Of a DNA stretch of 64,000 nucleotides, positions 1,599 through 63,299 are shown in pieces. The DNA lies in NCBI GenBank assembly GCA_009103225.1, contig RHPI01002533.1, positions 1,865,186 to 1,929,185 on the forward strand, read 5' to 3'. Under the pieces are notes generated by a model. It was not told where the DNA came from and did not search any database. It saw nothing but the letters and a program-made list of their open reading frames with translations. This stretch comes from Chlorokybus atmophyticus (taxonomy: Eukaryota; Plantae; Mesostigma and Chlorokybus algae). The position numbers and the translations under genes are program-made. How positions within the stretch are numbered: position 1 is the stretch's first letter; each line of letters begins with the position of its first letter.

Positions 1599-4500
1599 TC
1601 ACACGGTGTTGGGTCTCTGCGGCAGCAACAAGTTATAGAACGCATCTTTCACAAACACGTCTCCCGGCGCTCCATTAGGTTCAGTAAATCCTTTCTTCCA
1701 CGCGCACCAACCACCTGAGACGATGGACTTGATGTTCTCTGACCCCGTGTAGTGCGGGTCCAAGATCAAGAAAGCCACTTCGCCCGTGAGGGGATTGAAG
1801 TCCACGCCGAGGAGAGTGAAGGCCAACACGCCGCCGCCGATCATGATGGGGGTACCCTGCAAGGAGTAGGGGAAGAGTGGTTGCTGAATGGTATATGTGG
1901 TAAGGTTGCGGTTGGACTAATTTGTGGAGGGTGCTGGCTGCGGCGAGTACGTGCGAACATGTGCTTGCCTCTCCACACACGAGCATACACGCACACACGC
2001 GTGCGTGTATGCTCGCAGCAGGTATGAATGCACACTTGCTTGCTTGCTTCTACACACGTGCATATACACATATGCCCCACACACAGGCACACACACGCGC
2101 AGAAGAGATCACACAACAGTAACATCCCAACACTAACTCCCGCACCTGGGTTTCAAAATGTCTTGCGATCTCCCTGGCCCTGCTAGGGACCTCCGCGCCG
2201 GACGAGAAGGTGAGCAGCTTGCTGGACACGCCGATCAGCGTGTCGAGGACGTAACTCAGCTCGATCGCGCCGATCCACTGCCGGGAGTTGACGAAAGTGG
2301 AAGGCTTGTCCTCGATCCGCACCAACACCTCCTGTGGAGATACATATGACATGACAGTTGAGATAAGCACTGTGTGCACGTGTGCGGTTACTCTTAGTGC
2401 GCGCACATCCACGTACACAGACCCGCTTGCCCACAAGTGCACACGCGCACGCACACGCATGCTCGCACGTTTGTGTACATTGTGCAAGCATTTGTCTGCG
2501 GGTGTGTGCGTGCACATACCCGCACACAAACACACAAACAAACGCATGCAAACACACGCACCCATGCGCACGCACACACACGCATACGCACGCAGACACA
2601 TACACTGTTGCGTGCACACCCACACGCACGCACGCATGCACACGCACACCTACCTGTATTTCGCGATGAGAGGGAACGGGCACGTTGGTATAGTGCTGCA
2701 ATCTGAACCACGATATAATAGTCTGCAGCGATCGGTACGCGCATCCCCACCCGTTATCATCAAACCTGTCTTGCATGTAATGATAATAGTCATACGACCC
2801 ACTTATCAGATACTTTGTCCCGTTTGATACGAACGAGTTGCCCAAACTGTTGTGCACGTCGCGAAGCCGTTTCGATATCGATGTCGAGGGAGCAGCGGTC
2901 GATGCGATATCGGTGTCACCGAAAGATATCGCCGATGCGGGGCGGACAAGAGGCCTGTCTAGAGGCAAACCCAACCGCTGGTGGATGCGATATCGGAGCT
3001 GGGAGTTCTTTTCGTCGTCTTGGCTGTATATTAATGATATGGCATGCTCCAAGTCAGGAGGCTGGAAGTGATATGCCTTTGGCGTCGATATTGATGAGCC
3101 GGATGATGGGGAAGACCCGACTGATGTCGCTTGCGCGAGCGATATCGCTTGTGCAACCAAAGTGCTTTGAATTTGCTTTAAAGCGTGCGGGAGGGTGAGC
3201 GTGTTGTGGGCGTACACTAACACGTCGAGGTGCATCGCCATGTGTGTGAAGGTTGTCTCCTTGTCTGCGCAGGGTTGAAATGACAGCAAAGGTGCGGCAG
3301 GCTTCAACCCGTTGACTTGTCGGGTAGAGTGTGTCCGCCGAACCAAAAGTGTCGCGGTTGCAACTTTGGGCAACTGTCACAATGCCACAACAATATCGCA
3401 TGTCACAACAGCGAACACGTTTCCTCTGCGTACACACAACGGCACGGACTGCGTAGAGCTACGCATGTACATGCATAACCACTGCATGTGTGCATTTGCG
3501 CGAGCGTGTGTGCGCACATGCGCGCGCTCACACGCACAACTCACCTGAGGGTGACCCGGCACTTGTTGTCTTTTCAACCGCGCAAACATCGTCTTTTCAA
3601 CAACAGAAGCATCAGCAGCTACCTTCTCTTCTCCTTCTCTATACGGCCGAACCAGCGTGACGATACCAACAGTTGTTGCTTCACCACTACTGTTGGTACT
3701 GCTGTTGCCTTTCCTCTGCTGCTTCATCATCAACTCCACTGCGAAGGCCGCATCCGCACTCTCAAACACCTCTCTGGCAACGTTGCGCGCGGAAGAGAGG
3801 AGTGACGCCTGTTGTTGTTGTGGTGGATGTTGTGGTGTGGCAGTGGTGTTGCAGTAAGAAGGCACTGAGGCGGTCAGCGTGCAGCGGACGAGTGTGGTGT
3901 TCTGCTGAAGCCATTGCGTTGGGGTGTCCTCGCTGAACCGCACCTGAACACACGCATGCATGAACAACTCAAGAACACACGCACGCGCATGCCACCCAAC
4001 AACTCCCCTTCCCTCACACCTGCCCTTCTCCCCTGACAACCCTCACGCTGTCCTCCCCGCCCGCATCCACAACCACACCGAGCGGCACGAGCACTTGCGC
4101 TTTGGTTGTTGTTGGGTCTGATGGTGCTTCTGTGGCTGTGTGGGTGAGTGCGACGGCGGCTGCGAGGTCGAGGCCGTGGGGGAGGAGGGCGCGAAGGAAA
4201 GCTGGGTGTGCAGAAGGGAGTGTGAGGAAGGATGAGTAGGGGATGAGAGAGTAGCGAAGCAGAGACACAAACAAAACAAGCAATAAACTTGCAAGCATGC
4301 ATGCTTGCTTGCAAGCCTTGCACGCAAGCAAGCACGCAAGTAAGCAAATGCTCAGCAAGCGAGCAAGTAAGCAACCATTACATGCAATCAAGCAAGCAGA
4401 TGAACCAACAAGTGAGCAACTAAGCAGCCAAGCAAGCAGACAACTAAACAAACACACAAACAACGATCTGCCATGCACACCAACAAATCCGTAAGCAAAC

Positions 4501-9260: not shown

Positions 9261-10159
9261 GCGGGCTTTCAATGCAGACTTGTAGCTTACAAACAGCAAG
9301 GCACTTACACATTTACATACACACTTAGACACAAGGCTTACACGGATGACGGTCTGATGTGTTGACTAATTGTACCGTGCAGCTATGAGCACACACCCAC
9401 AACAGATTGTCACAAAAAGTGTGGAGCGGTATGTGGTGTGGTTAAAGGCTACATGGGCTTGTCATAAAGGCACGAAAGACGCCCTTCATCGCAACGCAAC
9501 TTGCGCAAGTTGTGTTGCAACATGCGTTTCACAAAAGAAATTCCACTTACTAACAGTTCCGCCCTACTTATTGATTATGGTTGTATAAGCAGTGGCCCAT
9601 TGTTGTGTTTGATCTGAGACTGAGATTCTTAGTAGATTGCAGCACACCAACATCAACCATGCACTCACCATAACCGTGTTTATACATGACCTACGGCTCA
9701 CTTCACTACGAACTCGACGATCACTGCCACTACCAGTAACCATAACACTAACCACTAACCGCGATAATATGAGACATACTTCAGCACCAGACGTGAACGT
9801 GTCCACCCATGCACTGAGCATGATCTGCTGCCCCGTTGTACAACTCAGAACATGAGCAATGCGCAGAAAGGAGTGGCAACAGCAAGGAAATGTCCACACG
9901 CATGTGCACCCATATTCTGCACTTTATGTACATGTCAACCCCGCAATGCCAGTGATTGAACCAGTAGGAAATGCCGTCTGGTGAACAGAACCGCATCATA
10001 CCCTCAAGCGAGCATTACAACAAAATCTGCGTGCGGTGAATAACTACATTGTGGAAGTGCAACTAAGCTACGCTCTGTGTGCTCTCAATGGTGAAATGGG
10101 TGTCTACAAATGGCAGCTACACTTCCCGCCTCACAAAGCTTGCTCACACTGGCGCAGTG

Positions 10160-11630
10160 TCATGATGAGTCGGCAGCCACACATACACGCTTTGTGGCCT
10201 GTTCATCGCCCTCGCTGTGCTCATCAGCCACAGCAGCCTCCACAGCAGCCACCGCCACGCTCGTAGCTGCGGATGAGAATTGAGCAGGTCTCAGTTCTTG
10301 CAGTGTTCGCAGCGCAGACAAGCTGCTCTTCAAGATGCAGCTCTCATCAGTCATAGAAGCCGGTAGGGAGACTAGATCAAATTGCTCCTTTGCTGGGACC
10401 ACTTCAGTATGTGCTGCTGCTGCTCAGTGCACCAAACGACAGAGGTTGGTCATCATGATTGAAGGCAAGAACCAGCCGGCAACAGCAACATGTACTGACC
10501 TGATGTGAGGTTCAACACTTGTTGGAAGGATGCTTCTGCCTTGCGCACTAATCTTGTGAGGATTTCAGTAGTGTAGAATGGCTGCAATGCACTCAGTGAG
10601 TGACACTTGGTATGCAAAGCAACTTGCAATTGCTGAAGCCAGCAGATGTACAAACCTGTTTTAAAACATTCGCCAGGTAAGGTGACCGCAGCAATAGGCC
10701 TGTTCTCTTGTCATGCTTTTTCAGAATCTTTACAAGACCAGTGTAGTTGAGAAGGCTGTAGTTTTCCAACAGCACCTGCGCAGTGCATCACTGAGTCTGC
10801 TGAATTCAATGGCTGGCTTGCTGTGCAGTGACAGCAATGCATGAGAGACTCACCATTTCTCCATGGAACTCTACATATGACTTTCTCAGACCATTGACTT
10901 CTCGGTCATCCAGCTCACAGTCTTCCCGTAGATCACTTTGCTACAATACAGCAAATATCAATGACTGCGACATCATATGCTAAGCCAACAACACATAATT
11001 GAATGTCGTCTTGCTTGGAACTCAGGGGCTCACCAGCTTGGCCAAGTGGTCGTCCAGCTGCTTGAGGTGAATGACAAACTCCTCCTCCTTGTCCATGAAG
11101 AACTGGTTAAACTTTTCAAGCTCGTCATTAAGCATACGCACGAATGCCTTCTCATCCTCGGTAAGTGAGGAGGCACCAATGCTTCTGGGATGATGATAAA
11201 TTGCGCCATTGGGAACGGCAGAGCCATTCATGCGGTCACACGGCATGTCTATGGAGCCATTGGTGGAACCTGGAAGCACTGAGTTGAGAAAGCCCCCTCT
11301 AGCTTAAACCACAATGCGTTGGAAGAGCTACAGCCGTCACAGAGCACTGCACCGGGAGCATGTAGCATAACTGCAGCTGGACAAGCATAGCTGAGAACGT
11401 GGCCTTGCTACTGTCCCTGTGAAGAGTCAAGGCACGCAGCTGATGTCCAACCACGTAACTCAGCAATGAGGTATACAGCCATTGATTGTTATACCTGCGG
11501 GCGACTCTGCCGGGCCATTTTGCGACAGCTTCTTCAACGACTTCTTGAGTTCCTTGTAGCACAAAAAGTTGCTGCGCCACTCCGGCAACGCATCCTCAAT
11601 GCTGTCCCGCAGCCGCTTGCCGAACTTCAT
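10160..11630 (-). CDS. SPX: SPX-domain-only phosphate-signalling protein (SPX1-4 type), about 6 exons
   Basis: Motifs seen: [63 protein letters not shown]|[26 protein letters not shown] and PFYTTE. No EXS, MFS or RING domain follows. Confidence 0.93.
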
Positions 11631-11973
11631 AGCTGCCAGAGCCCAAACTCCTCCCGCTCCTACACCAAATCAAGCACAAGCAAGCCCTGCAGCGCCCTTG
11701 CAGCTACACTCCAGCCAGACCCTCCGCCTGGCGAGGTGAGGGGAATCTCAGGGTGAACTCCGCCTCCGCGCAACCAAAACCCACACCACCCCGCAAGACA
11801 CAACGCCAAACCGAGCCTCGTATCGGCAAGAACAGTTTCTACTCGGCCCGCTTACACCGGCGACGGCGAAAAAGACGACCCGGCGACGACTACAACGATG
11901 ACACCGCCGACGGCGACAACCACCGCCAAAACCCTAGCTAGGGAGCGAAAACGGACCCTTGAGCTCATGAGCG

Positions 11974-11981
11974 GAATATAC
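11974..11981. promoter_or_regulatory. Candidate P1BS (GNATATNC) PHR1/PSR1-type binding site upstream of SPX
   Basis: GAATATAC lies about 345 bp upstream of the SPX ATG. It is a single short motif and could be a chance match. Confidence 0.35.
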
Positions 11982-13126
11982 CACGCACCTCTGCAATTAT
12001 CAGCAGGGCAGCGGCGCAGTCGCGACTCTGATACCGGCAAGACCTCTTCGGACAGTCAACGGGACCCAAGACAAACCTCATTTTAGGACTTTGCCGGATT
12101 TGTCACATCCCTCAAAACCAACACAAGATTCGTTGTAGGATACCGGCTGGCTTCTAGCAATACCCGGAAAACCTGAAATGCGAGACACAGTGTCTTTGTA
12201 AGCCCGTTCCCTGCCAGGACCCTGGTTCCTCATACGGGCTTTTGTTATAGGCGGGTTCTGTCGGCTGCCGCAGGATGCGGCCGCTCGAGACCCGAAGAGG
12301 CTTTCGGTGGCAAAACGCATCTGAACGGTCATGTATGCCTTAATTCAATGCAAAGCAGCAGGTATTGGGTGTTATAGACGGGCTCATGGAATCAGAGCCT
12401 CGGTTAAATGCTGCCTAATGCCCGGCCATGTACGACCTTGCGGGTTGGCGTTTTGCGCGAGATTCTCGTTCCCCGTCGCGGCGGACGGTTTCAGGAATCC
12501 TGCGCTGTTCGTCCCCTGCCCTGTCCGGCGACGCCGCACCCTGGTACACTGTGGCAGAGGCCTTGGCGACCTGTTCAGAGATACTGTCCCTAACACCAGC
12601 ACGGATTGATTGGTTTTTTGGCAGAATGGAAACAGATTGACCGTACTATATGCAGTTCGGTGAGATGCTGGATCACCGGACTGCAAATCCTCTATCTTCT
12701 GCACTGTCAGAAGCGCGTGCTACTGCGTCAGCAAGCGAGCACTGGTCGTGATCGTACAGAGAAGCGGCCGGTAAGACCGTGCTGTCATGATGGCAACGTC
12801 GTGTCAGCGCCGCTCAGCGGTGAGTCAGGTTAGGAGCACTGGGCTCTATGGATCTGGTCAGTCATGACGTCGAACGAAGCGAAGGTTAAGGCCCAATTCC
12901 GCTGCGTTCAGTATGCCCAGGTGTGTAACTAGTACCTAAGGCGCAGTGCGCGTCTTGAGCGAGGAAGGTTTAACCTGTACTACACGTTGCGCAATGACAG
13001 TCAGACCAACGGCGTAGCCTACTGTGAAGCTGTACGATCTGTATGTACACATGAAAGCGCTTCGAGCAGTTCGAAAAGCTACTGAATGGACACCCCCTAC
13101 CTACTACAACATCCTCAGTAAAATAC

Positions 13127-13420
<294 letters not shown>

Positions 13421-15232
13421 ATACCGGTAGGCAATTGGCGAAAACATGACCCCATGTTTTACGGCAAATGCGAATGCATGTTGAGGGTTGGCCTTCTTAT
13501 GCGTATTGTAGCAGGCAAGCGCAGTAGCTTGAAGCCATCGCAACTGCATCCAATCAGCGTTTAATAACATTCGTGTACACTATTAAGCATGGTTTTATAA
13601 TGTTATTTAAATTATGTTACGAGATAACGTGATAAAAATAATAATGCACATTTCATGTATGCATAGTTGTATGGTTGATTTGTCTCGTCATGCATGGTTG
13701 ATTTGTTTCGTCATAAATGGCAATGATGCAATGCTACGACCATAAATTGCATGCATACCAAATCACCGGGCTACACACTTAATGCTTGCACCGCATGTCG
13801 ATTGTGGTCTATTACACTGTTTACGACACTAGCTGTGCCCCCGTCAGACATGCCTACATGCAAGTACGTGTCGTAAGATCTGCCCATAAGGCGTTGTCTG
13901 TACCAAACACTAACTGTTTGTTGCTGAGTCACCTGCGTATGATGAGTACGATATGCATCACCAAATGTTGCATGACATAATTTGCAATTATGTGGTATCT
14001 ATGAAATGTAATGCTGTATACATCCGCTAGCTACTAGCAAGTGGACAAGAGTAGTATTCTTGCATGAGAATTCAATATTATGTGTTGTATGTGAGATTGA
14101 GGTATTAATTATAATTTGTTAATGCACGGATGTGTATGATTTGCATGTAAATGAGGGTTCAGTGGTTTACATGCTACATTCATCAGACAATGCAATATGA
14201 ACATGGTTAATAACTGATGAGTAACATTTGCTTGGGACATTTCATTACATTTTTATTTAACTAGTTGTCAATGTAAAGCTTAATATGTATGATTTGTAAT
14301 TAGATGAGGATACAATGATGAATTGATACCTTTCATAAGTAGCCATGCTTACCTTTTATCAAATAACGCAAAACTCCATACACATGATCAACGATGGATG
14401 AGTAGCATGTTTAGAACATAGTATTACTTTTGGGAAAAGAAAACTGGCTATCGAGCTTTTATATACTTTGAGCATGAAATGTAACTACCACAATTGGGAT
14501 TAACTTTCGTCACATGATGCACTTCTTTGCGAGCAACTTCTTTATCATTAATGAATTGTTAGAAGAGAACACTTCATGCGAGACCGCAAAGTACTACTGC
14601 GGCAATGAAGCGACCAAAATGTCATGTTAAGGTAATGTACCCCGTGTACACATGTACATATGCGATGTCTATACGCGTATGTATACGCACACACCGATAT
14701 GGTTGACCCAACTTGGCTTGGTTTAATTGTTAACACCACAACGCCACATATACACAATTATACACAACTATTACTGATGACAAAAATAAAACATGCAATA
14801 ATAGGCAGAACAATACAACACAATTCCACGTTGCAGGATGTAGGACACTAATCAAGTCTGATACAATGACGGGGTGCTTATACAAAGCCTGATATCGAAC
14901 AATACTACTACACAATGCATGTTGGCAATGATGTCACGGCGTACCATGCACACGCTGCAGAGCAGAACCAAGATTTGCTCACCTGCCACAATTGCGAGGT
15001 TGTCGTCCACCGGTTGAGATACAAGTCAAGGGCAGGGTCATAGTTATCGATGCATCCAACAAGCAAGCATGCAGAGTAGGATATTCGCCACCTTAAGCGC
15101 CTGACTTCTTGGCTTGATATTGCAATTTGAACCCAGGTAGTGTTACCGATGGCGCAGCCAGAAAGGAAAACCAGGTGCATAATGGATACATGCAGTTTAC
15201 AGGCCAAGCAACATGCACAAAACAGATGTCAA

Positions 15233-18200
15233 TCAGGATTCATCGCCCCAGCGTCCTCTTTCTGCTAGCGACTGGGGCTCGACATCACGCTGTACTGCTT
15301 CATGCTTGCGCCGTTCGTGTTTGCTTGAATGCCTGTGTGAACTTATGTCAGTTTCAGGCTGCAGCCATGACCCCATATAAGCACATGACATCTGAATGCT
15401 CCCGATGCAAGTGTGGCGGCACATGAAAGGCTTAAAGTTCACACATGCCAGCTGACAGCAGTACCTCTTTTCGTTGTGCCGCACATCATCCCTATCTCGT
15501 TTCTGCCGCCCATCACAGCCGTGACTGCAAACATGCAAAGCAAACAGTTCATATGCACTGCGACATGCACGTGCATGCCAGGTAGTCTGGTGCGTCCATA
15601 ACCAAGCTTGGGGACTGTAAGACAACCACAACACAAGGTCACACTTGAGCCAGGCTGTATCAAGCACCTGTTGAGCTGTCTACGGACACTTGGGCTGCGA
15701 CTTCGACTGCGGCATGCATTCGGATACCTGCTCGCCATATTAAAACTGCGCTCTCGGCTACGGCTTCTCCTGTCTTTCCAACGACTTCGGCTGCGGCTTT
15801 GGCTTCTACTGCGACTGCGGCTTCGGCTGCGATGATGACTTCTTCTATGTGAGCTGCCATCACGCCTTTGTGGCTGCTTGTGTGATTCTAGCGACTCTGG
15901 TATGTCCAAGTCAGCACGCCTGTAGGCGCCTCCAGGATTGGGGAAAGGGTGCAGGAAGTTGCATGTTTCACCCCTTGGACACACCTGAGACACGAGCACG
16001 GCCATGCACACACGTGCAGATACATACAGAGCAAGACGTAAGTCAGTCCAAGGTGTCAAGGTAGCGTCGCATTCAGAGGATATGCTAACAATGTCTGCTA
16101 AGTTGTTGCACCATCTCATTGATTGTGTATATGTTGCACCAATTGTGTTAAACCAACCAAGCTGAGTGTTTCCCAATGCAATGTGCTACCTGTCCTCGGC
16201 TGTAAGCGCCGCATATTGCAGAGCGCCATTTGTTCACAGGCACAAACTCGCATGCTACCTGCCAACAGGCAAGGTTACCATATCACATAGTGCCAACAAC
16301 AGATTGAACATGGCATTCAGACTTCTTGCAGGGAAAGAAAGGGAAAGGGGCAAATGGAGCATCCAACACAAATGAGCAAGCTGGAACCTGCTTTCCATCG
16401 TAGTAACGCGAGTTGATGCCAGCAAATGCGCTCACAGCAGACTCAACAGCATGGAACTGCACGTACACATTGCCCCGAAGATGTGGGCACTTGTTGCGGC
16501 AAACCTGAGAGTTGTACGTTTCAGCATGCAATCTTGATTAGGTGCCCACATGACAACGCACGAGTGCGCACCAGCAAACCAACCAACAAACAAACAGATC
16601 CACACACACACGCGTGTGCGCCCCCACCTTGAAGTTGACAATGGTTCCATAATGTGCAAACTCAGCATGGACTTCCTGGTAGAACTCCAAAAACTGCTCC
16701 ATCTCCGCATCTTCATCAGCCTGGAGTGATGCATACACACGTTAATTGTACAGTGTTTACAACTGTATGCTTGCCTTCCGTGTGTCAAACGAGGCGTGAA
16801 CGTCACTTCTGCAGGCATATATGCAACACAAAGCGAGCAGCAACATCATCAAGTTGAAACCTCCAACTCGTCTTGCGCATTAGCAGTAGCGGCAAACATC
16901 CCCGGCATGAGCAGTGTTGAAGAGGCTTCTGGCCTCGGATGCGCTCTCGAACAGCGTGCACCGAACCGACAGGCGCCCACTTTGAGGTAAAACGGACAGT
17001 ACATGCGGCTCTGTTTCAAAGAGCCAACGTTGTGACAAAAGCAACATTGCCAATCTTTACATCTACTAGAGGAGGACAAACATTGCCGTGAGAATCAACC
17101 CACCTTCTCAGTCCCGAAATTGTCTTCCGCGATGGCGTCTTTTGCGCAAAGGCGCGGTGTTGAGGCTGTAGGCACCAATGCGCGGGTCGGCGTAACACGC
17201 AGGAACTTTGGCGTCTGTGACAACAACCAACAATGGCAACGGAGGCTGCTGACACATCTCTCGCACATGAGGTTGATTCCAATGCCAAGTGTGTACGTAT
17301 AACATTGACACACAGGGGTGCACATAATGAGTGCGTTTGTGTACGAGTGCAAGAGTACAAGTATGAATGTACATGCTTATCTGCGCGCGTCTGCGCATGC
17401 TTGTGAGGGTGTATTACAAGCCTGACCTGAGAGCTGCCTTTGCCAGCACGTTTGATGATGATGTCATCGCCATCAAAGATAATCTCGGGCTCTCCATCGT
17501 CGGTGTCAGCTGATTCTTGCAGAGGTTGCAAACCAAGAACAACATCGCTTCTGTTGTCGGCAGCTGTTGCGAGGGAAGCTCGTTGTTGCAGCTCTTCACG
17601 CAGTGCTCGCTCGCGTGCCTCCCAGGCAGCTTCATCGATCAGAAACGAGCTAAAGTCTGTGGCTGACTCCTTCTGCAACCTCTCCTGCACGAAATAAACA
17701 AAGAGTGAGCTCAGCTCACACGACTGTAGCTGAATTTGCCAATGCAGGTTCAATGTGTCGTCTTACGCAACAGACTTATGGTTACGCATGCGCGCGCATG
17801 CACGCATTCCAAGCACAGGCACACGCACACGCACACGCACACGTACAGAGACGGGCACATTTGCATGCAACTGTACGGTATTGAGTTCGTGTCACATGCA
17901 TGATGCTTATGATACAACGCCAGACGCAGCGTAGTGTCAGTGCTAACATGCAGTGGATAAGGTATTATTGATGACATCGACAACCGCAACCGCCACGGCG
18001 ACCGCAACACATGTTGATGATGACGGCGACACGTGCAGGCATGTATAGCAAAACAGTATCGCATTGCACTTCATGCGTGCTGGCATGTAGCATGCATAGC
18101 TTGTGCACACCACACAGAAGTGCCAATCCCACACACCACGCTGCTTAACACTTGCAGCAAAAGAAAGAAACGGCAATGACGCCATGAGCAAGTTCACACC

Positions 18201-29140: not shown

Positions 29141-32100
29141 ATGCAGGCTGTAGCTGCGTCCATCAGCAGGCAATCCGTCAGGTACAGCGATCGCCCAGGC
29201 AGCAACATCAGTAATGACAGCTCCACAACGACGCTGCTGCTGCCTCCGCCGGCAGCTGCAGTGGCGAGCTTGAGCGCACTGCCAGGGCTGCTGGTGCCGG
29301 TGGATTCACCCAACAGCTCCCTCGCCAACCACAGCGGGAGCGCCGGGGCGGGCAGCGACGCCCTAACGCCCATCAGCCCCACTTCTGACGCGGGCGAGCT
29401 TGAGCACACCGGAGGCGGCCATGGCAACCTCGGTGGCCATGCCTCCACCTCCGGGCGGGGTGGTTACGGCGACGGCGCCAGCACGTCGTTCAAGGGAGAT
29501 GGAGGCAGCAGCCTCCACCATGCCACTATTAACAGCGGCGGGAACCACCACCGCCAAGCGCCAGCACTCGACCCGCAGGCGGCGCTGCGCTTGCTATCGC
29601 CGTTCATTCCGCAGCTCCTGCTGCAGAAACTTAGTGCCGCAGGTAAGCTTCACAGCAAGCACCAAAATCACCAAGCATGTTGAGCACACAGTGGTAGAGA
29701 CATTATTGCTTGCATGCACTAGAGGGTTCTTGTCATGAAGCATCCAAATTGTTTGGGATCTTGCATGTTGTTAACTCGCAACAATTGGGAACGCTATGTA
29801 GTGGTGGATGCTGCACGGTGCCAACAGGATGGACTGATCTTCTTTGCCCCATCATCGAGCGGACTAACAACGTAGTGTGCATCTCTTTAGCTGGATTGTG
29901 CAAGGTTCGACAAGTGTTTTTGTTGCACAGGCAAAGAGCCCATGGTGCCTTCAATGGAGGTGTTGACGTGCGCCATGTTGGTTGCCGATATTTCCGGGTT
30001 TACTGCGCTCACAGAGCGTGCTTTGCTCAACCGTCGCGGCACGGAGATTGTGGAAGAGCTCACAGCATGCATGAACAGATATTTCACAGAGGTAAAGTGA
30101 TGTTCTTGCGGGAAAGCACGTTGTTGCAAGGGCCTCGTGAGAGTTGGCAAATAGAAGGCTCATTTTTTACATACATAGAATGCATGTCGTAGTGACTGTA
30201 AGGGTACGGGCGCAGTCTTACTTGCGTGAGTATATCAGGGACCAGGTCCAGTGCATGGAGCATTGCAAGTGACAGTCATGTTAGCAACAACACGTTGCTC
30301 CAGCAAACGTGACGCATTCTGCACAGTTGATCGGTGCACTGGCTGCATGACAATCAAACGGGGCACAGCATACACATGCCTAATTGCCAGGTGTCGCAGT
30401 GTTCATGGTGCAATGGTAATCAGTGTCTTTGTTCAGGCCATTGAGATTCTCATGGAATATGGTGGTGATGTGATCAAGGTATGCTGTCCGTGCAAGCGGC
30501 TATCCAGTTGAACTAGAAGTGTTGCATATGCAACTTGTGGCTGAGTTGCTGCATGTCACAAGATACCTTGCATGTTGATCTGATCATAGATGGTGCTGCA
30601 GTTTGCTGGAGACTCCATGCTTGTTGCCTTTCCATTGGATACTGCAGCCAGTGAGGTAAATATGCAATTGAGGGATTGCATGGGTCGTGCCACAACGCAG
30701 TACTGAACCCTTTTCTCCATGCTGTCTAGTCTTTGTCAGCATGCGCTTTGCGAGCAGCAAAGTGCGGTGATGACCTCGTTTGCACTCTGGGCGCCTACTC
30801 GCCCGAGGTAAGCAGAACCAGCTTGTTTACAATATGCATTTGTTGCAGCTTGGTCTGCAATTGTTGCGTCAACGTTGCTATGCCTGTCTTGAAGTGACTT
30901 TAACATCATGCTTTACAGCTTGGAGGCTACGGCACTACGGACTACAGCAGTGCCAACGACTCAGACGAGGGGTTGCCTCTAGCCCGAGGCTTGTCTCCTT
31001 GCGGTGGTGGACTGGGACCAACAAAAGTGCTTGTGGTGGATGACATTTTACCAAACAGGGTTGTCCTAGGCAGGATGCTAAGCAAGCTCGGCTGCGAGGT
31101 GCGGATTAACACACAACCAGCTGTTGGTGTTGTGGTTGGTACTAAGATGGTGTCTGCAGGTCATGCATGCGACCAATGGGCTTGATGCCGTTCAGCAATG
31201 CGAGCAGCAGGAGTTTGCGTTTGTTTTCATGGACCTGCTTATGCCCCCGGGCATGGACGGTTACGAAGCAACCAGGCGCATACGTGGGCTTGGATGCACG
31301 GCTTACATTTCAGCTGTAACTGGACAGAAGGAGAGCGAGGTTAGGGCCGCGTGTCAGGACGCTGGCATGGACGGCTTCCTTGTCAAACCCATCACCATGG
31401 GCACGCTCATGAAAATCATCACCCCCAAGATGGGGCACAGCACGCGTGGTCGTGACATTGGCTCACCTGCTCACTCGCGTCGCCGGCCTGCCGGCGCACA
31501 GCGGCTTCAGGCGGGAGTTCTTGGACCGCTTACTCTGTCTTTGAAAGTGATGGTTGGCATTGGAGAGGTGAGGGGACAGCTGCCTTTTATGTTGCAACTG
31601 GCATCAGCCTTACTGAACGAGGCCTCACATTTACACGCTTCTGCTTTGTAGATGGCGGCTTTTCGTACTGGCAGTGATGTTGAGTTGCCCTCCAATGCTC
31701 CGCGCTGGGAGTTTTTGCTCGCTGATTACAATGTCGGCGACTCAGCTGCGCCACGGCGGCAGCCAATCGAACAGATTCAACAGGCTGATGAGGTTGCGAA
31801 TCCCGGTAAGTTGCACCATTCACAGTTGGTTAGCAATGCCGACAACATGCCTTGGCTTTAGGGAACCTTCTTGCCTGCTCAGGTGACGTCATTTTGTCGC
31901 CTGAAATCTGGGCATTGGTGCACGCTGTCTGCGAAGGCGAGCACCTTCCCACTGGCAATGTGCGATTGAATAAAGTCACTGCGGAGGTACCTGAGGTTAT
32001 CCGACGAGAGCGCACGTATACCAAGGAAGAAGCCACTGAGGTGCTTGCGCAGCTCAGACCCTACATTCCAAATACGATCCGCAGTCGACTTGAGGCTGGG

Positions 32101-35100
32101 GAGAAGCATTCTCTTTCGGAGATACGGAGGTGCACAATCCTTTTCCTTGGCCTGCCATCTCTGAACCCCAAACTGCGCAACCCGGATCAGCTTGAGGCGG
32201 TTCAAACCGCCATGCGCGTTGTGCAAGGCGTGTTGAAAAAATTTGAAGGTTGCCTGGCACAGTTTCGAATGGACGAGAAAGGTAGGTGGCTGACCAGATG
32301 GTTTGTGAATAATGTATGGGCATGCAGCTTGAAGCAAGCTTATGAATGAATGTTTGGACCAGGTTTCTTGATGATATGTGCATATGGTGTCCTTGGGAAT
32401 ACGCATGAAGATGATCCTGCTCGCGGTGTTGCATCTGCCCTTGCCATCCGAGCCGGACTTGCACAGGAGGGTCAAGATGGTGTCATTGGCTTGACAACAG
32501 GTTGATTGATGTGTTTGCAAGCTAGCATCAATCAAGTGCTATATCTGTGACATTGCTGAACGAATTGCATGCTCTTGTGCGGTAAGCGGAAATATGATGC
32601 CCATATATCAATCTGGAGCTTGTCACACAGGCAAGCTCTTTTGTGCTACTGTTGGAAGCAAGCGTCGTTGCGAGTTCACTGTTTATGGCGACTCCATCAA
32701 CTTGAGTGCAAGACTGATGAAGAAGGCCAGAAACGAGGTTTGCACAGCAGTGACTGTCAGCTGCTGTCTACTGACTACTGACGCTGTAGGCTAATGTCCC
32801 TTGGTGCAGATTCTCGTTGATGCTGCCACATACACTGAGACAAAGGACATTTTTGACTACACCGTCCTACCCCCTGTCCAGGTCAAGGGAAAATCTATGC
32901 TGGTCCCGGTGTTCCGGCCGCAGGGCATAAAACCAGGCAAATCAAAATGGGCTTTCATGGAGGACACCCCTCCCGCAAAGCGCATAGATACGTCTCCGAA
33001 AAATAAGTACCCTGGGCCTCTCGTTGGTCGACAGCGGGAGACTGCCCTCATTCTGGAACGGATTAAACAGCTCACAACTGCCAGCACTGGCAGCGTGTTC
33101 ATCGTGGAAGGGTTGCCTGGCATTGGCAAGACAAGGCTGGTTGATGCCATCTGTAGCAATCTACCCGACACCTCTTGCCGTGTGCTATATGTCGCTGGCA
33201 AGAGCAAAGCGGAGCTGCTGACGCCTTGGAAGCGACTACTGAGCTCGCTGCTGTTTGACAAGAAGATGACAAACAAGCAGAAGGGCCTGAAAGTGCTTTC
33301 TTGCCTGGACTACTCTGCGTGGCCGGACGTACTGTTATTAGCAGACATCTTTGGCCTCGACTTCTCTGATCAAGACAAGGACACAATGGCGTTTCGCTCG
33401 CGCATGGACGACTCCCCGAGTCGTATGGCTACCTTTCCGACTCGACTTCAGGTGCGGCATCCCATGCATGTGAAGGTTGGAGCAATTGACAATGCGCTAA
33501 CGTCAGTGTCACTTGTAGGATCAACATAGACGAGGTACAACTGCCACGTCAACAGCTCAAGAACTTAGCAGCTTGAGAACATCCTCGCAAAGTCTGCAGC
33601 ATGAGGTGATTCCTCGTCATTGCTTTGGTTACCGTATTAGTTATCATGTTTGTTCAATAATCAATTCACAGCTGCTTCACTGCCTGTTTCTGGCAGCATC
33701 CTCGCAACATGAGCACACCAACCGCCTTGGACGGGCGCACGCTACGCGCTTCTGGTGCAGAGCATAAGCTAGCCCTGGGTTATCGGGCAGAAAAAATCTG
33801 CGAACTCATGCAGAAGCTTTTGCGCTCCATCATTCAGCCGCCGTGCATACTCGTGTTGGAAGACGCTCATGTATCCAACCACTTGCCCCAGTTTTGTTTA
33901 TGAATGGTTGCTGTGCAGCTTTTATCCTGTTCTCACCATCTCGCTTGCACAGTTTCTCTCTGCTGGTCTCCTTGACCATCAATACAGCACTTTGATCCGC
34001 TGTCATGGATTGTCGCAAAGCAGCTTGTCGGCGATGTCAGCTTTCCAATCCTCCTCTTGATTGCGATGCGCCCGATGGAGAATAAGCTCTCGCCAATGGA
34101 GGTCACTGCCATTGAAAATCTGCCAGTGACGATGAAGGTATGCGTGCGTGTGTGCACGTGTTTTCTGCACGTCCGCAACAGTTGCATCTTTGAACGGGCA
34201 AGCTGACTGGCGATGCAGGTTCGGCTCACAGAGCTGACGGAGGAAGAAGCACGCACCCTGGTTTCCAAGATTGTCGGCCCGCAGAAGGCTTCACAGCTGC
34301 CCGAAGCATACTACAGCACGATATATCAGAAGACCAAGGTCAGCACCCAGTAGCTTTGTGGATCGTTTGCTCCAAGGCATTGTAGCTTACGAACGTTACT
34401 GACATCTCATATCAGGGCCAGCCTTTGTTTGTTGAGCAAATGGCTGTTGCCATCAGCTCCAGCGACATCAATCAGTCTCTGGAGACAGAGACATTGACTC
34501 GCCCGATAGAGGCGTTAATAACCAGCAAGATAGATCAGCTCAACCCGATTGATGTACTCATGCTGAAGGTATTTTACTGCTTGTAGTGCCACACTGTTCA
34601 AAGGTTGGGACGAGGCACGCTGAAACATCGTTGTGCAGATTGCCAGTGTGATTGGCACAAGTTTTAGCACAAAACTGCTGCAAGCCGTCCTCAATAGTCA
34701 GCTGGCTCGAGAGCGGCGCACAGCTGGCAATAATGATGATGAGGTGCGTCTTTCGTCCCATGGCTGTTTCTATTACGTGTTTTCCATTGGACTCCCCTCA
34801 CCACTGGCATGGCAGGTCGTGTACCTGAACGATCATCAATTTATGATTGGGCTTCGTGAGCTTGAGCAGGAAAAGTGGTTCACGCGTCGACGAGAGGATG
34901 GCAAGGGCATGTATCACTTCACAAACTTTCTTTCCCGTGATGTAATGTACGAGATGATACCCATATCACAGCGGCGGACCATTCACACGGATGTGGCAGC
35001 CAAGCTGTTTGAGATGTCCGACAATAACAATGTTCCGAGCGCAATGGTGGCTTACCATTACACATTGGCCTGCCGCGATGTCGAACACTACGAGAACGAC

Positions 35101-37184
35101 CTTCTTGAAAATGCAATTCAACACTGGGAACGTGCTGCCGAGCATGCACTGCACACCTTTGGACAACATGTCACAGCGGTATGTATGCCTTGCTGCACCT
35201 GTGTGTCTATGCTACCACCCACTCCTTTGCTCTTGCAACTGGAAACAGTTTGTGTGCTGTGCAGATTCGGTACTACAAAGAGGCTGTTGCTCTTGGTGAG
35301 ATCGCTCGCAACGACATCAGCGCTAGTCGGCGTGCCATTTGGGAAAGGTTAGTCGTATGCCACTGGTTATGTTGGTATCTGGTCTTGACAGTCGCTGAAC
35401 GCCTAGTGCTTATGCGACACAGGCGCATCGCGTATGCTTACATGGCGATTGGGGACTTGGATGCCAGTATTGAGCATGTCATTAGCGCTTTGAAAGCTCT
35501 GGACGAGCCCATACCTGATGTACATGAGATGTCGAGGCGCAGTCAGATTGAAAGAGTGCGCAGCAACTGCCGAACAGGCTGCGGCAGCCTTGTTGCAGAG
35601 CTGTTCCTCAAAGCCTTTTACTCGCGACACACTCGCCTCATCCCGAGGCCAACTACTCCAATGAATGATGTAGTGATGGCGATCGAGTTCCGCTTGCAGG
35701 CTCTGTACGACCTAACAAGCATTGCTTTGTGCAAGGTAAGTCACACCAAGGGGACATACCGGACACGCTAGTTAGCATGCAACAAGTTGCAGCCTGATTG
35801 CTGAATACCAACTTTGTTGTTGTATTACCTTCTGGCCAGAATGACGTTGCCCTGGCCACATATGCCTGCTTGAGATACCTCAACTTGACTGAAAGCCTTG
35901 ATGGGTCGCACATAGAGCCGAGTATTGAGATGGCTCGAGCGTACTCCATCGCTTGTGCCATTGCAGAGGACCCGGAGTATGCATACGAGTACCAGGCAAG
36001 AATTGTTGCATTGTCACAACCTTTGCTAGTGTGCATGCTGCGTGAGCTACTGAGATGTTGGCTCCAAACAGGTTCGCTGTTTGGAAATCCAAGGCATGTG
36101 CACTTCTGCGGATGAGAGTATATACACAGCAGACATCCTATACAATATCGCTGTGAACTCTGTCACTCGGGGAGACTGGCAGAAAGCGGAAGAGTATGCG
36201 TTCGAGGCCACGACCATCTTTTTAAGTTTCCAGGACCAGCGGCAGGTGGACATGTGCCAGTGCATCACCGCCGTTGCAAACTACCATCAGGGCAACTTCG
36301 ACAGTTGCCAGACGGCAGCTGAGGTGCTGCACAGCTCGCGTTTGGGCCATCCAGACTTACGGCTTTGGGGGCTCTGCTTGCTTCTTGCCAGCCTCAACGG
36401 CCTTCGCAAGTACAAGAAAGCCATGACTGTGCTGCGCGCGTACCAAACCAAGGAGGATGAGATGGCCATCGCACCCGCTCCTACCATAATGAAGCTCTGC
36501 GTGAATGTCGTTGGCTGCGAGAGTTGCTGGCGATCTGGACAGCTGCATAGCCACCAAGAAGCTGTGTCGGTGGCGCTCACACTGTTGCCTGTAAGTGTTG
36601 CTACAGGTGGTCTTAAGCGTCATGCATGGTTTGTTTTAGAAATGTTAGCGAATTGTCTGGTTTCTCTTGATGCAGGAGCTGTTGGCAATCAAGCCCTTCA
36701 CCCCTCTCTATCCCATGGCAATGGTGTCGCTGCTTGAAGTCTTGGTGGAGTCGTTGAGCATTGAAATCACGGGCGTGACATTGCAACAGCGTCACTTAGC
36801 TGTGACCAAGCTAATGAAGGCCTTACATCGACTTGCCTACAGAATGAGTAAGTGTTGTCATCAGTCCAACATAACTTGTAGGTGTTGGGTGCGTATAGGT
36901 ACTTGATGTTGTTGTTGTTGTGCAGCGTTTATGTATGTCTATGTGAGCTTCTTCAAGGGCAAGCTTGCTGCCATCAAAGGTCAGCGCAAGAAGGCCGCGA
37001 AGTACTTCCACCAAGCTTTCAATGACGCGATGCACACAGGAATGCGGTAAGCAGCCTGTGCCATCTGCTGTATTCAATGCGTCATTCCATACAAGCAAGT
37101 TGCGTGGTCTTAACTGCTGATTGGGTGCTGCGCAGGCATGTACAGCGGGTAGCGAACGGTCTTTTTCATGAAAACCAACCATGA
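29141..37184 (+). CDS. Soluble-type class III adenylyl cyclase (ADCY10/sAC-like): C1 with inserted receiver domain, C2, STAND NTPase, helical/TPR-like C-terminus; more than 20 exons
   Basis: C1: LSPFIP, MLVADISGFTALTE, GGDVIK|FAGDS, LSLKVMVGIGE, WEFLLAD, GDVILSPE. C2: LSEIRRCTILF, MDEK|GFL, HEDDPARGV, GKLFCATVGSKRRCEFTVYGDSINLSARLM, VKGK. STAND: LVGRQRE, Walker A GLPGIGKT (33110-33133), Walker B LVLEDAH. Probable stop TGA at 37182-37184. Confidence 0.92.
31024..31425 (+). other. Response-regulator receiver (REC) domain encoded inside cyclase domain C1
   Basis: KVLVVDDILPNRVVLGRMLSKLGCE|VMHATNGLDAVQQCEQQEFAFVFMDLLMPPGMDGYEATRRIRG...SAVTG...DAGMDGFLVKPI. The DD pair, the phospho-acceptor D (31232-31234), the switch T and the K (31385-31387) are all present. 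Confidence 0.9.
33871..33987 (+). other. Candidate U12-type (minor spliceosome) intron in the cyclase gene
   Basis: The donor is GTATCCaa. A TCCTTGAC branch-like site at 33969-33976 lies 12 nt from the AG with no pyrimidine tract between them. The flanking exons join in frame (LEDAH|HFDPLSW). Positions +7/+8 deviate from the GTATCCTT consensus. Confidence 0.4.
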
Positions 37185-60454: not shown

Positions 60455-63299
60455 TCACACTTTGTAGTTCAGAGACTCCATTTCTTCCTCGCATTGCTTG
60501 TCGTCAACCAACTGACGCAATGCAATCTCAGCTTTTTCGGAAGGCTGTGTGCCAGCTCGGACCAGCTCAACCAGCCAGTATACGCCCTTAGCCTCACCGA
60601 TTGAGCGCCTGCTCGCTGTGTCAGTAGTTGCGACACTGCCCAGTGCAGATGCAGCCTCGGCCTTGCTGTTGTCCGTGCCGGAGCGCAACAGTTCAACCAG
60701 CAGGGGTATGGCTCCGGCCTCGCGGATACGGCGCGAGCAGTAGCCCCGCTGGTCGCTCTCAGCACCATCATGTGCGACATTGCCAAGTGCACGTGCAGCC
60801 TGGGCCTTGTCGTCGTCCGTGCCGGAGCGCAACAGCTCAACCAGCAGAGGTAATCCTCCAGCATCACAGATTGAGCGCCTGCTCTTTGTGTCAGTCAATG
60901 CAACACTGCCCAGCGCGCGTGCAGCCCAGGCCTTGCTGTCACCCGTGCCAGACTGCAACAGCTTAACCAGCAGGGGAATGCCTCCGGCCTCGCGGATTGA
61001 GCGCCTGCTCTCTGTGTCAGTGGATGCGACATTGCTCAGTGCACGTGTAGCCTGGGCCTTGCCGTCGGTAGTGCCGAAATGCAACAGCGCAACCAACAGG
61101 AGTATTCCTTTGGCCTCACGGATCAAGTGTCTGCTCTCAATATCACTGGTTGTGATATTGGCCAATGCATGTGCAGCCTTGGCCTTGCCGTCGTCTGTGC
61201 CGGAGTGCAACAGCACAACCAACGGGGGTATCCCTTCAGCCTTACGAATCAAGCTCCTGCTCTCATCCTCACACGCGACATTGCCCAATGCAAGTGCAGC
61301 TTGCGCCTTGCCATCGGCCGTGCCGAATTGCAGCAGGGCAACCAACGCGGCTATCCCATCCTCCTTTCCGGCTACACGGATCAAGCGTCTGCTCTCAACA
61401 TCTGTGGAAGTGACATACGCCAATGCCCGTGCAGCCTGGGCCTTGCTGTCGTGCGTGCCGGAGCGCAACAGCGCAACCAATGCAGGTATCCCATCCTCCT
61501 TTTCGGCCACACGGATTAAGCTTCTACTCTCAACATCAGTGAGTGCGATATTGGCCAATGCCCGTGCAGCCCAGCCCTTGCTGTCGTCCATGCCGGAGCG
61601 CAACAGCGCAACCAACAAAGGTATCCCTTTAGCCTCGCATATTGAGCGCCTGCTCTCGGGATCGACATCTGCAACAATGGCCAGTGCATGTGCAGCCTCG
61701 GCCTTGCCAACAACATCAGCGCCAGATTGCAACAGCGCAAGCAGTGGCGGTATCGCCTCGCGGATCAGCTCCTTTACCTCCACATCTTCTTGAACTGCTC
61801 CATTCTCCGCATCCTCGAGTAGGCATACCAATGCTCGTGCCGCACCCTCTTTGCTGTCTGACAGGCCGGCGCGGAGTTTCTTGACCACTTTTGCAATCTG
61901 GTTGCTGACACTGCCGGCTGGAGCAGCCCCGCCTCGCTCTCCTGTACTGCTCTCAAGGCGTTGCAGTACGGACGGAGATACGGACTCGGGGCGCTGAGCA
62001 ACAATCTCCTGCAACAGAGCCATTGCTTCGGGGTGCTGTAACGCACGAAGCCCTTCATCCGTCTGCGCTACGCCCTCAAGAGCGGTAGCAGCCACTTTCA
62101 TGGCAGAGGGCAATCCCAGTTCCAATGTCCGGAGCAGCGGCATCACGAAAGCATCAGCACCCTGCCGTTGATGTATACCGTTTACCCAGCTGAACTCTTT
62201 GTATATGTCGCTGGCTACTGCATCCAGGTCCACGCCTTCCACTGCATCGTGAGACGCACTGGTGGCAGCCTTGACTGGCGGCTGTAATTTGATGCTTTGC
62301 AGAAGACTGCCTTCACCCGAGATACTGCTGGTGCCTGCCATTGCACAAGTGTCAGACACCAACACGAACACGTGGAACTGCAGCAAGCTCAGCGTAAGTA
62401 CCTGGCAATGCCGCGATTGCCGTAGCTGTTGCGCGCAGTGGCTCAGCCACGCGTTTCAACCAAGCCAAAGCTGGGATGTATCGCGCATATGTGACGAACC
62501 CCTCCGCTTCCAGCAACTTCACAATCTCCTGGACCTCTTCCTGTACCGCGTTCAGAATGTCATGGTTGTCTGTCGCACCTACGACCATGTCTTTGATGGT
62601 CATCACCATAATGCGGACAGCCTTGAAGGGGAAACGCTGCGAGTACTCTCTGTCTTTGGCAAACTCATCGGCCGCAACGAGCAACCTTGCTGGTTCAATA
62701 GTAGTAAGATTGCTGTAGCAGGCTGCCCGGTAGACGTCATCGTGGCTGTGCGAGTATTCAATGTAGAGATTGGTATACGCCAGCAGGTTGCGTTGGAATT
62801 GCAACAGATCCTGCCGTTCAACAAGGTTGATAATATCGTTGCCAACTTGTTCCACTGCCTGCCGCACCTCGTTGAGCGCAGTGGTTTGGCGAAGTGACGC
62901 TTGCTCAATCTGCAGACTGATATCGTGGCTCATGTTTTCCAACTCCTTTTTAAGCTTGTTGTTGTCTTGTTCTCTTGCTGCCTCCCAGCGCTTGAATGTG
63001 TTTTTGACGTTTTTGTCTATGGCGTCCAGCGCTTGGTTGACCAGCTCGTATTGCTGCGCTGCTTCAAGCTGTTTGTGCGCCGTGTAGAGGCGCACGGCGA
63101 GGTCTCCAAACCCGAGCACGATGCCAGCGGCGCTCATGGCGATGGAGAGCGCCCCACCTGTGGCGATGTTGCCGACGATGCTGCTTACTACGGCACCCGC
63201 GACCTTGGCTGCCATGCCGTCTCCAGACACAGTCTTCTTGGCTGCTTCGAGAACCTCCATTGACGGACCTTCGTCAGGGGCAGCCTTTGGCTGCGGCAT
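60455..63299 (-). CDS. Armadillo-repeat protein with a roughly 300-aa N-terminal helical domain of unknown family, 2 coding exons
   Basis: ORFs 62352-63482 and 60455-62386 join through a 67-nt phase-1 GT-AG intron (62401-62335): AIAALP-G-TSSISGEG. The likely ATG is 63299. There are about 11 ARM repeats of the GIPxLVxLLxSGTxDxKAxAAxALxNxA type. Confidence 0.88.
60590..61756 (-). repeat. Nine near-identical coding ARM repeat units of about 126-135 nt
   Basis: DNA-level units recur, e.g. gccttgctgt(c/t)gtccgtgccggagcgcaacag and gagcgcctgctc. The array has no introns. Confidence 0.9.

Follow-up and report, generated by a model that had tools for sequence, protein, structure and literature searches.

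Class III cyclases that are controlled by a receiver (REC) domain, and cyclases of the soluble adenylyl cyclase (sAC, or ADCY10) type, are each well known. Proteins that unite a REC with a class III cyclase are common in prokaryotes and known in algae and amoebae, and as far as described they always carry these modules in series. In CyaC, as in Dictyostelium ACR and the prokaryotic proteins in which a REC accompanies a cyclase homology domain (CHD), the REC lies beside the cyclase domain, and the enzymes are homodimers instead of C1-C2 pseudo-heterodimers. In the 2c-Cyclop proteins of Chlamydomonas and Volvox, a class III cyclase relies on a REC of its own polypeptide receiving a phosphoryl group (PMC6284317), but these are membrane proteins with a single cyclase domain that makes cyclic GMP (cGMP), in which rhodopsin, histidine kinase, REC and cyclase follow each other and the REC remains outside the catalytic fold. 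Here we describe a gene in a 64,000-nt stretch of Chlorokybus atmophyticus DNA (contig RHPI01002533.1; the whole stretch is referred to as the window) that encodes an sAC-type cyclase with a complete REC nested inside its first catalytic domain, C1. The joining of both themes by nesting is new as far as found: literature searches retrieved no description of a receiver inside a cyclase domain, or of a nested or interrupted cyclase domain, and no paper on the sAC-type genes of Mesostigma, Chlorokybus or Sphagnum.

As judged from its sequence, the gene product is a soluble (sAC/ADCY10-type) class III cyclase with C1 and C2, a STAND NTPase and helical repeats. Its coding region runs from 29141 to 37184 on the plus strand in 26 exons, and the 1817-residue model comprises, in this order, a low-complexity N-terminus, C1 with the nested REC, C2, a P-loop AAA_16/STAND NTPase and helical repeats. 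Introns up to position 34815 were derived from transcript contigs and later ones from homology to P0271, a full-length isoform model of Mesostigma viride (2034 residues), while parts of the 3′ end of this gene model, and of the Sphagnum models discussed below, were set by hand and by paired search.

The transcript evidence consists of assembled contigs from three RNA runs of a 2013 and a 2021 study, in which rare isoforms may be hidden. A 6295-nt contig (X1, record 1) was 100% identical to the window, and a 6247-nt contig (X3, record 7) from another strain was ~97% identical; both were colinear with the window through exons 30730–31883 onward. A contig from the separate 2013 study (X2) joins 30919–31098 to 31160–31512, and its loose ends show the junction from 30807 to 30919. 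The nesting had been proposed in a preliminary description of this DNA, the exon positions of which (30730–30807, 30919–31098, 31160–31567, 31652–31805 and 31883 onward) all turned out to be correct, as did its GT-AG, in-frame junctions, since 18 of the 18 transcript-derived introns were GT..AG and kept the frame. The spliced form that it expected in cDNA, with both REC exons included, is present in contigs from all three runs, and no joint skipping exons 30919–31098 and 31160–31567, the event named there as speaking against the proposal, was reported among these contigs. The insert and its borders are laid out as follows, with P0271 as the Mesostigma reference:

29141–37184 (+): whole sAC-type cyclase coding region, from transcript contigs to 34815 and then from homology.
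30730–30807 (+): C1 helix alpha2 (SLSACALRAAKCGDDLVCTLGAYSPE), the final piece of the cyclase fold ahead of the insert, aligned with bacterial alpha2 and with sAC C122–E136.
30808–30918 (+): phase-0 intron (GT..AG) that coincides precisely with the 5′ border of the insert, with its junction in the X1 and X3 contigs and in the X2 loose ends.
30919–31023 (+): linker 1, residues 280–314, starting with a conserved LGGYG; 53% identity to Mesostigma.
31024–31426 (+): REC, residues 315–428, split by the intron 31099–31159; Pfam PF00072, structure model and identity to Mesostigma.
31039–31044, 31232–31234, 31319–31321 and 31385–31387 (+): REC residues D320/D321, D364, T393 and K415, respectively, with coordinates from the gene model.
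31427–31528 (+): linker 2, residues 429–462, basic, of variable length and poorly conserved (31% identity to Mesostigma); disordered in the structure model.
31529–31567 (+): cyclase strand beta4 (LTLSLKVMVGIGE), with which C1 resumes; aligned with bacterial LSLRIGIGAGE and with sAC I141–H151.

The insert thus measures 183 residues (280–462), close to the about 200 that had been claimed. Exon 30919–31098 encodes linker 1 followed by the first strand and helix of the REC (KVLVVDD...), and exon 31160–31567 encodes the second part of the REC, linker 2 and strand beta4. Because this latter exon also carries beta4, skipping of the REC would break C1.

The identity of the insert was assessed with Pfam, in which, as for PDB comparison and structure prediction, the Mesostigma ortholog P0271 served as proxy for the window protein. 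Exon 31160–31567 by itself matched Response_reg over profile positions 25–110 (E 9.6e-17; 61.6 bits vs. a cut-off of 30.2), the VLVVDD strand being supplied by the upstream exon 30919–31098, and the ortholog matched positions 1–110 of 111 (E 3.9e-24; 85.4 bits). Of the predicted pattern of a Guanylate_cyc match split by Response_reg, the receiver part was therefore recovered in the window itself, while the single short cyclase exons, as pieces too short for the profile, gave no Pfam match. The REC contains the full phospho-acceptor set (D320, D321, D364, T393 and K415) plus F412 at the position of CheY Y106, with the acceptor Asp codon falling at 31232 as anticipated, and the Mesostigma REC has the same phospho-acceptor and aromatic residues. 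Its nearest solved relatives are the receivers of hybrid histidine kinases (RcsC, SLN1 and the plant AHK4/AHK5), a receiver type that exchanges phosphate with HPt proteins.

The site of insertion was located by transitive alignment, from the window to bacterial homologues, on to a bacterial profile and from there to human sAC (4CLF). The profile of 15 bacterial homologues aligned with 4CLF residues 29–471 (E 2.6e-75), and it places the beta4 region of the window protein on sAC I141–H151 (IRVKIGLAAGH), with the insert replacing the loop at about E137–D140. This bears out the earlier placement at the short loop before IRVKIGLAAG of human ADCY10. Approximately 95 bacterial homologues lack the insert and join alpha2 to LSLRIGIGAGE by a short loop; where two BLAST segments abut the site in these proteins, the flanking coordinates are nearly contiguous. 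Rather than lying in series outside an uninterrupted cyclase domain, the algal REC is thus situated between alpha2 and beta4. That known REC-cyclase fusions carry the REC outside the catalytic fold, as the preliminary description stated, is consistent with the described systems and with the many prokaryotic clusters of 330–580 residues that carry PF00072 and PF00211, for which domain order is not given; the described fusions and the clusters of 330–450 residues are too short for a nested C1-REC-C1-C2 arrangement.

Structure prediction with AlphaFold2 on the ortholog gave low confidence for C1 with a 70-row alignment, and a 90-row alignment was used instead (mean predicted local distance difference test score [pLDDT] of 76.7; predicted template modelling score of 0.67). 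In this model, beta1-alpha1-beta2-beta3-alpha2 are followed by a disordered linker, the REC, a second disordered linker, beta4-beta5, the rest of C1, and C2. Helix alpha2, which ends at 30807 in the window (...GAYSPE), corresponds to helix 77–102 of the ortholog, linker 1 has a pLDDT below 50, and the REC adopts a (beta-alpha)5 fold (ortholog residues 138–255) with block-mean pLDDT of about 88–97. The linkers are ~35 residues each in the window protein and up to 68 in Mesostigma. Foldseek comparison of the model with the PDB returned human sAC for all of the top 24 matches (template modelling score by target 0.70–0.76; E ~1e-20 to 1e-22), aligned over the whole ortholog model. Transcripts, Pfam, alignments and the ortholog model therefore agree that a complete receiver domain is nested inside C1. 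The N- and C-termini of a REC are adjacent, on the face opposite the phosphorylation site, and because they lie so close together, such a domain should be easily inserted in a loop.

For three clusters in the AlphaFold database (A0A818XJD5, A0A6H5L2A8 and A0A835YMU2), the colinear alignment with the C1-REC-C1-C2 model spans ~465–505 residues, with a high root-mean-square deviation, where ordinary sAC-like matches align roughly 390–410 residues; at the corresponding site, these three proteins might contain a folded insert. Compared with the bacterial homologues, C1 has two more lineage-specific insertions, within window positions 31652–31805 (residues 476–526): one of 6 residues in the beta4-beta5 arm (SDVELPSNAP), and one after WEFLLAD of 11 residues in the window protein and ~44 in Mesostigma.

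The nesting is shared with relatives of the window alga. In a library of 1.8 billion representative proteins, a search with the REC exon, which returned mostly hybrid histidine kinases, found the nesting in only one protein, P0016 of Mesostigma viride, and among fragments or shorter proteins the searches yielded none with both PF00072 and PF00211. Identity between the window protein and Mesostigma is 70% in the N-terminal and 58% in the C-terminal part of C1, 64% in C2, 53% in linker 1, 61% in the REC and 31% in linker 2 (with 33 gap columns), so that the REC, being near the C1 and C2 values, is as constrained as the catalytic domains. The Mesostigma models P0016, P0270 and P0271 are JGI isoforms (Mv16533-RA.1/2/3), among which RA.2 starts inside C1 (MIVAFPL...) and RA.3 inside linker 1 (MGGGYAST...); these two may stem from errors of modelling, or else mark alternative starts from which a REC-first protein without the first part of C1 would result.

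A second relative was found in the peat moss Sphagnum, where the protein model P0327 (396 residues) is mis-annotated and stops inside the REC. The Sphagnum balticum locus (L001; GCA_965153435.1, OZ233171.1, 10001–24229) contains a complete ortholog that is annotated as three genes (10001–14229, 15788–16749 and 17147 onward), the first of which skips exons 12426–12479 and 12887–12964, the latter ending in a GC donor. By homology, the Sphagnum exons encode beta1 to alpha2 of C1, a linker with the same LGGYG plus the REC, linker 2 with beta4, the rest of C1, C2 and the NTPase, and single exons match Response_reg (8.1e-10) and Guanylate_cyc (7.2e-6) in Pfam. Around the insert, the Sphagnum and window genes share six intron positions, including that of the border intron 30808–30918; the Sphagnum gene has two extra introns inside the REC, and one GC donor. 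The annotations of S. jensenii, S. troendelagicum and S. fallax contain this truncated model as well. In the Sphagnum REC the acidic pair DD has become DG and the switch Thr is Cys, with the phospho-acceptor Asp, the Lys and the first Asp of the pair kept. The preliminary description suggested looking for the same nesting elsewhere; the feature is not confined to a single alga.

In a tree of C2 domains, from which Parachlorella was left out and in which Trebouxia and Chlamydomonas were included, a single clade (100/100), separate from the bacterial sequences, unites the window protein with Mesostigma, Sphagnum and four chlorophyte proteins; window and Mesostigma are sisters (96/88), and the place of Sphagnum within the clade is not resolved. 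Of the chlorophyte homologues (Trebouxia, Parachlorella, Chlamydomonas incerta and C. eustigma), Trebouxia and Chlamydomonas belong to this Viridiplantae clade. These homologues likewise have a long stretch inserted between alpha2 and beta4. However, their inserts are not REC domains but stretches of 580–900 Ser/Ala/Gly/Pro-rich, low-complexity residues without any Pfam domain (P0152:667–1244, P0157:553–1161, P0201:368–1040 and P0202:209–1103). A eukaryotic protein from ENA (P0349) has ~190 low-complexity residues in the same loop. With large inserts in chlorophytes and the REC in streptophytes, the alpha2-beta4 loop emerges as an insertion hot-spot of the green lineage. As read from these homologies, the REC version dates at least to the common ancestor of the window alga, Mesostigma and mosses.

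At the level of strains, 16 of the 17 listed differences between the window and the X3 strain within the exons checked are synonymous, including 11 of the 12 in the REC, linker and beta4 exons. The nested form is expressed, under purifying selection and evolutionarily conserved. The X3 strain carries the same organism label, and its ~97% identity fits the cryptic Chlorokybus species that have been described (PMC8611356). It also has in-frame 3-nt insertions (GCA and GCC) at window positions 29257 and 29422, in the low-complexity N-terminal exon, and a compensating +1/–1 pair at 33770/33773.

The remainder of the cyclase core and the start of the NTPase comprise the following features:

29931–30091 (+): C1 exon with beta1-alpha1 and the metal Asp D187 (ADISGFT) at 29987–29989, aligned with sAC 34–111 including D47.
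30437–30655 (+): C1 exons 30437–30478 and 30602–30655, with beta2-beta3, K235 (= sAC K95) and D239 (FAGDS); from transcripts and alignment.
31652–32281 (+): rest of C1 (beta5 arm, RWEFLLAD, GDVILSPE), C1-C2 linker and start of C2; exons 31652–31805 and 31883–32281.
32363–32950 (+): remaining C2, with T722, N729 and R733; exons 32363–32500, 32631–32737 and the start of 32810–33451.
33017–33214 (+): N-terminal part of the AAA_16 STAND NTPase, with Walker A GLPGIGKT and K848 at 33128–33130; Pfam E 2e-7.

The AAA_16 match covers residues 70–135 of exon 32810–33451 (E 2e-7); in the Mesostigma ortholog it reaches E 3.7e-13 and is accompanied by weak TPR_12 and NB-ARC matches. C1-C2 of the window protein is 51% identical to the ortholog, which in turn matches 4CLF with E 5.6e-27, human sAC being the best solved relative by both sequence and fold. 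As seen in the ortholog model, two class III cyclase homology domains lie in one chain in the sAC pseudo-heterodimer fold. Human ADCY10 shares with the algal protein this tandem of C1 and C2 in one chain, the P-loop NTPase and helical repeats that follow, the metal Asp pair (sAC D47 and D99; D187 and D239 in the window), K95 of the bicarbonate site (K235) and the C2 residues T405, N412 and R416 (T722, N729 and R733). It differs in that it has no insert between alpha2 and beta4, whereas the algal protein carries two more small C1 insertions and has Gln in place of both K334 and Arg176. The bacterial CHD-CHD-AAA_16-TPR cyclases of Chloroflexota, Acidobacteriota and Verrucomicrobiota (P0153–P0269) have the same architecture and C1/C2 catalytic pattern, at 33–40% identity over C1-C2, but are without insert at the site, without receiver domain, and mostly with Lys at the K334 position.

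Specifically, the purine-selecting K334 of sAC is replaced by Q653 (32260–32262). Gln also occupies this position in Mesostigma, Trebouxia, Parachlorella, Chlamydomonas eustigma and Sphagnum, the last with the motif YEGALAQFRMDEKG (P0271, P0151, P0152, P0157, P0202 and Sphagnum L001), and hence in every green-lineage homologue that could be scored, whereas Lys is found in 99 of the 114 proteins scored, these being bacterial homologues, and Arg in 4. At the position of Arg176 of the sAC bicarbonate site, the window protein has Gln518, Mesostigma has Ser and the bacterial profile has Gly. Mycobacterium tuberculosis Rv0386 has Gln/Asn at its purine-selecting positions and is active. With its metal and C2 residues in place, the algal enzyme is probably active as well. 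The "cAMP source" of the preliminary description accordingly stands as far as a class III, sAC-type cyclase core is concerned, but not as a sure claim about the product: since K334 is Gln in green-lineage members, cyclic AMP (cAMP) as the product is an assumption.

Taken overall, we favour, as a moderately probable reading of these sequences, that the nested REC acts as a phosphorelay-controlled regulatory input of the sAC-type cyclase. An HPt protein of the alga's His-Asp phosphorelay would phosphorylate D364, and the phosphorylated REC, tethered to C1, would change the output of the cyclase, most likely either through docking of its alpha4-beta5-alpha5 face onto the catalytic core in response to phosphorylation, or through REC-REC dimerisation. 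The product would be cAMP or, because Gln replaces the purine-selecting Lys, possibly cGMP. A tethered docking or dimerising regulator is preferred over a rigid lever because both linkers are predicted to be disordered, and a direct, rigid form of the action on the C1/C2 interface that had been suggested earlier is not indicated by the ortholog model. The REC is apparently phospho-competent and the cyclase apparently active; gating by a phosphorelay is plausible. Partners for such a relay are plausible too, since the Mesostigma and Chlorokybus genomes are reported to contain a complete cytokinin-type two-component pathway (PMC7027972). There is, moreover, a green-algal precedent in the 2c-Cyclops, in which phosphoryl transfer to the REC keeps a class III cyclase active (PMC6284317).

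Several observations weigh against this proposal. The linkers are long and predicted to be disordered, and no coupling path is visible in the AlphaFold2 model. Chlorophyte homologues tolerate 580–900 low-complexity residues in the same loop, and the alpha2-beta4 loop may therefore accept inserts without function. The changes in the Sphagnum REC suggest that at least one lineage may do without canonical phosphorylation, and mutation of the receiver aspartates in Dictyostelium ACR had only modest effects (PMC3009899). Finally, with K334 and R176 both replaced by Gln, neither substrate preference nor a bicarbonate response can be assumed from the sequence.

The alternative that best withstands the data is that the REC has a function independent of phosphorylation, serving as a docking, dimerisation or localisation module, and thus as a pseudo-receiver in effect, for example by aiding STAND oligomerisation or by binding a partner protein. 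The flexible linkers of the ortholog model fit a tethered interaction module, and Sphagnum, with DG for DD and Cys for the switch Thr, has yet kept both the domain and its nesting. Dictyostelium ACR, similarly, does not depend critically on its receiver aspartates, and its dimerisation is served by a HisKA domain that is itself defunct (PMC3009899). However, the two algae diverged deeply and their RECs have still kept all five phospho-acceptor residues as well as the aromatic switch residue, and even the Sphagnum REC retains the phospho-acceptor Asp and the Lys, so that we regard such a role as unlikely, albeit worth serious consideration.

Far less credit can be given to the idea that the REC is a largely neutral passenger of an insertion-tolerant loop, without regulatory role. 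The site is indeed a short surface loop (about E137–D140) in human sAC and the bacterial homologues, and it houses 190–900 low-complexity residues without Pfam domain in chlorophytes and P0349. Against this, the REC is as similar between window and Mesostigma (61%) as the catalytic domains are, with linker 2 at only 31%, strain differences are nearly all synonymous, and the REC has been kept in mosses. It is just as improbable that the protein is a pseudo-cyclase, i.e., a STAND scaffold whose core no longer makes a cyclic nucleotide and whose REC regulates something else. The replacement of K334 by Gln in all green-lineage members, the loss of R176 and the three insertions of C1 relative to bacterial homologues would agree with it, but neither the window protein nor its Mesostigma and Sphagnum counterparts have lost the metal Asp residues, the phosphate-binding motif ISGFT or the equivalents of T405, N412 and R416. 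That the nesting is an artefact of mis-assembly, of a separate gene inside an intron or of normally skipped cassette exons is barely credible, for although exons 30919–31098 (180 nt) and 31160–31567 (408 nt) are multiples of three and their skipping would keep the frame, the joined form occurs in three RNA runs of two studies without a reported skipping joint, the second exon also encodes cyclase beta4, and independent genomes (Mesostigma protein models and four Sphagnum species) show the same order.

Elsewhere in the 64-kb window, no two-component genes were found among the large open reading frames; 2183–3373 (–) matches UfSP2/Peptidase_C78, and 60455–62386 (–) matches a long Armadillo-repeat protein. 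A further sAC-like protein came to light in ENA (P0261; 2901 residues, eukaryote-like), in which PDEase_I (PF00233) is combined with sAC-like cyclase domains and AAA_16. This fusion of synthesis and breakdown recalls CAPE, but on an sAC scaffold.

If phosphorelay control by the nested REC holds, the protein would show how nature can achieve allosteric control by inserting a domain on the alpha2 side of C1; in membrane cyclases, the G-protein binding grooves correspond to this side. On the evolutionary scale, we tentatively, and with considerable doubt, consider that the nested REC is an ancient streptophyte invention that directly converts a His-Asp phosphorelay of the cytokinin/ethylene type into a cyclic nucleotide signal. 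It is possibly older still within Viridiplantae. The 580–900-residue stretches in the chlorophyte loop could represent this insertion in decayed form. With the Sphagnum ortholog, sAC-type cyclases reach into the land plants, some of which would then possess, in addition to CAPE, another bona fide class III cyclase. This would bear on how plants make cAMP, a matter of long dispute, the sources of which in land plants are contested (PMC11032487), and the nested REC would tie two-component signalling to cyclic nucleotides within the plant lineage in a testable way.

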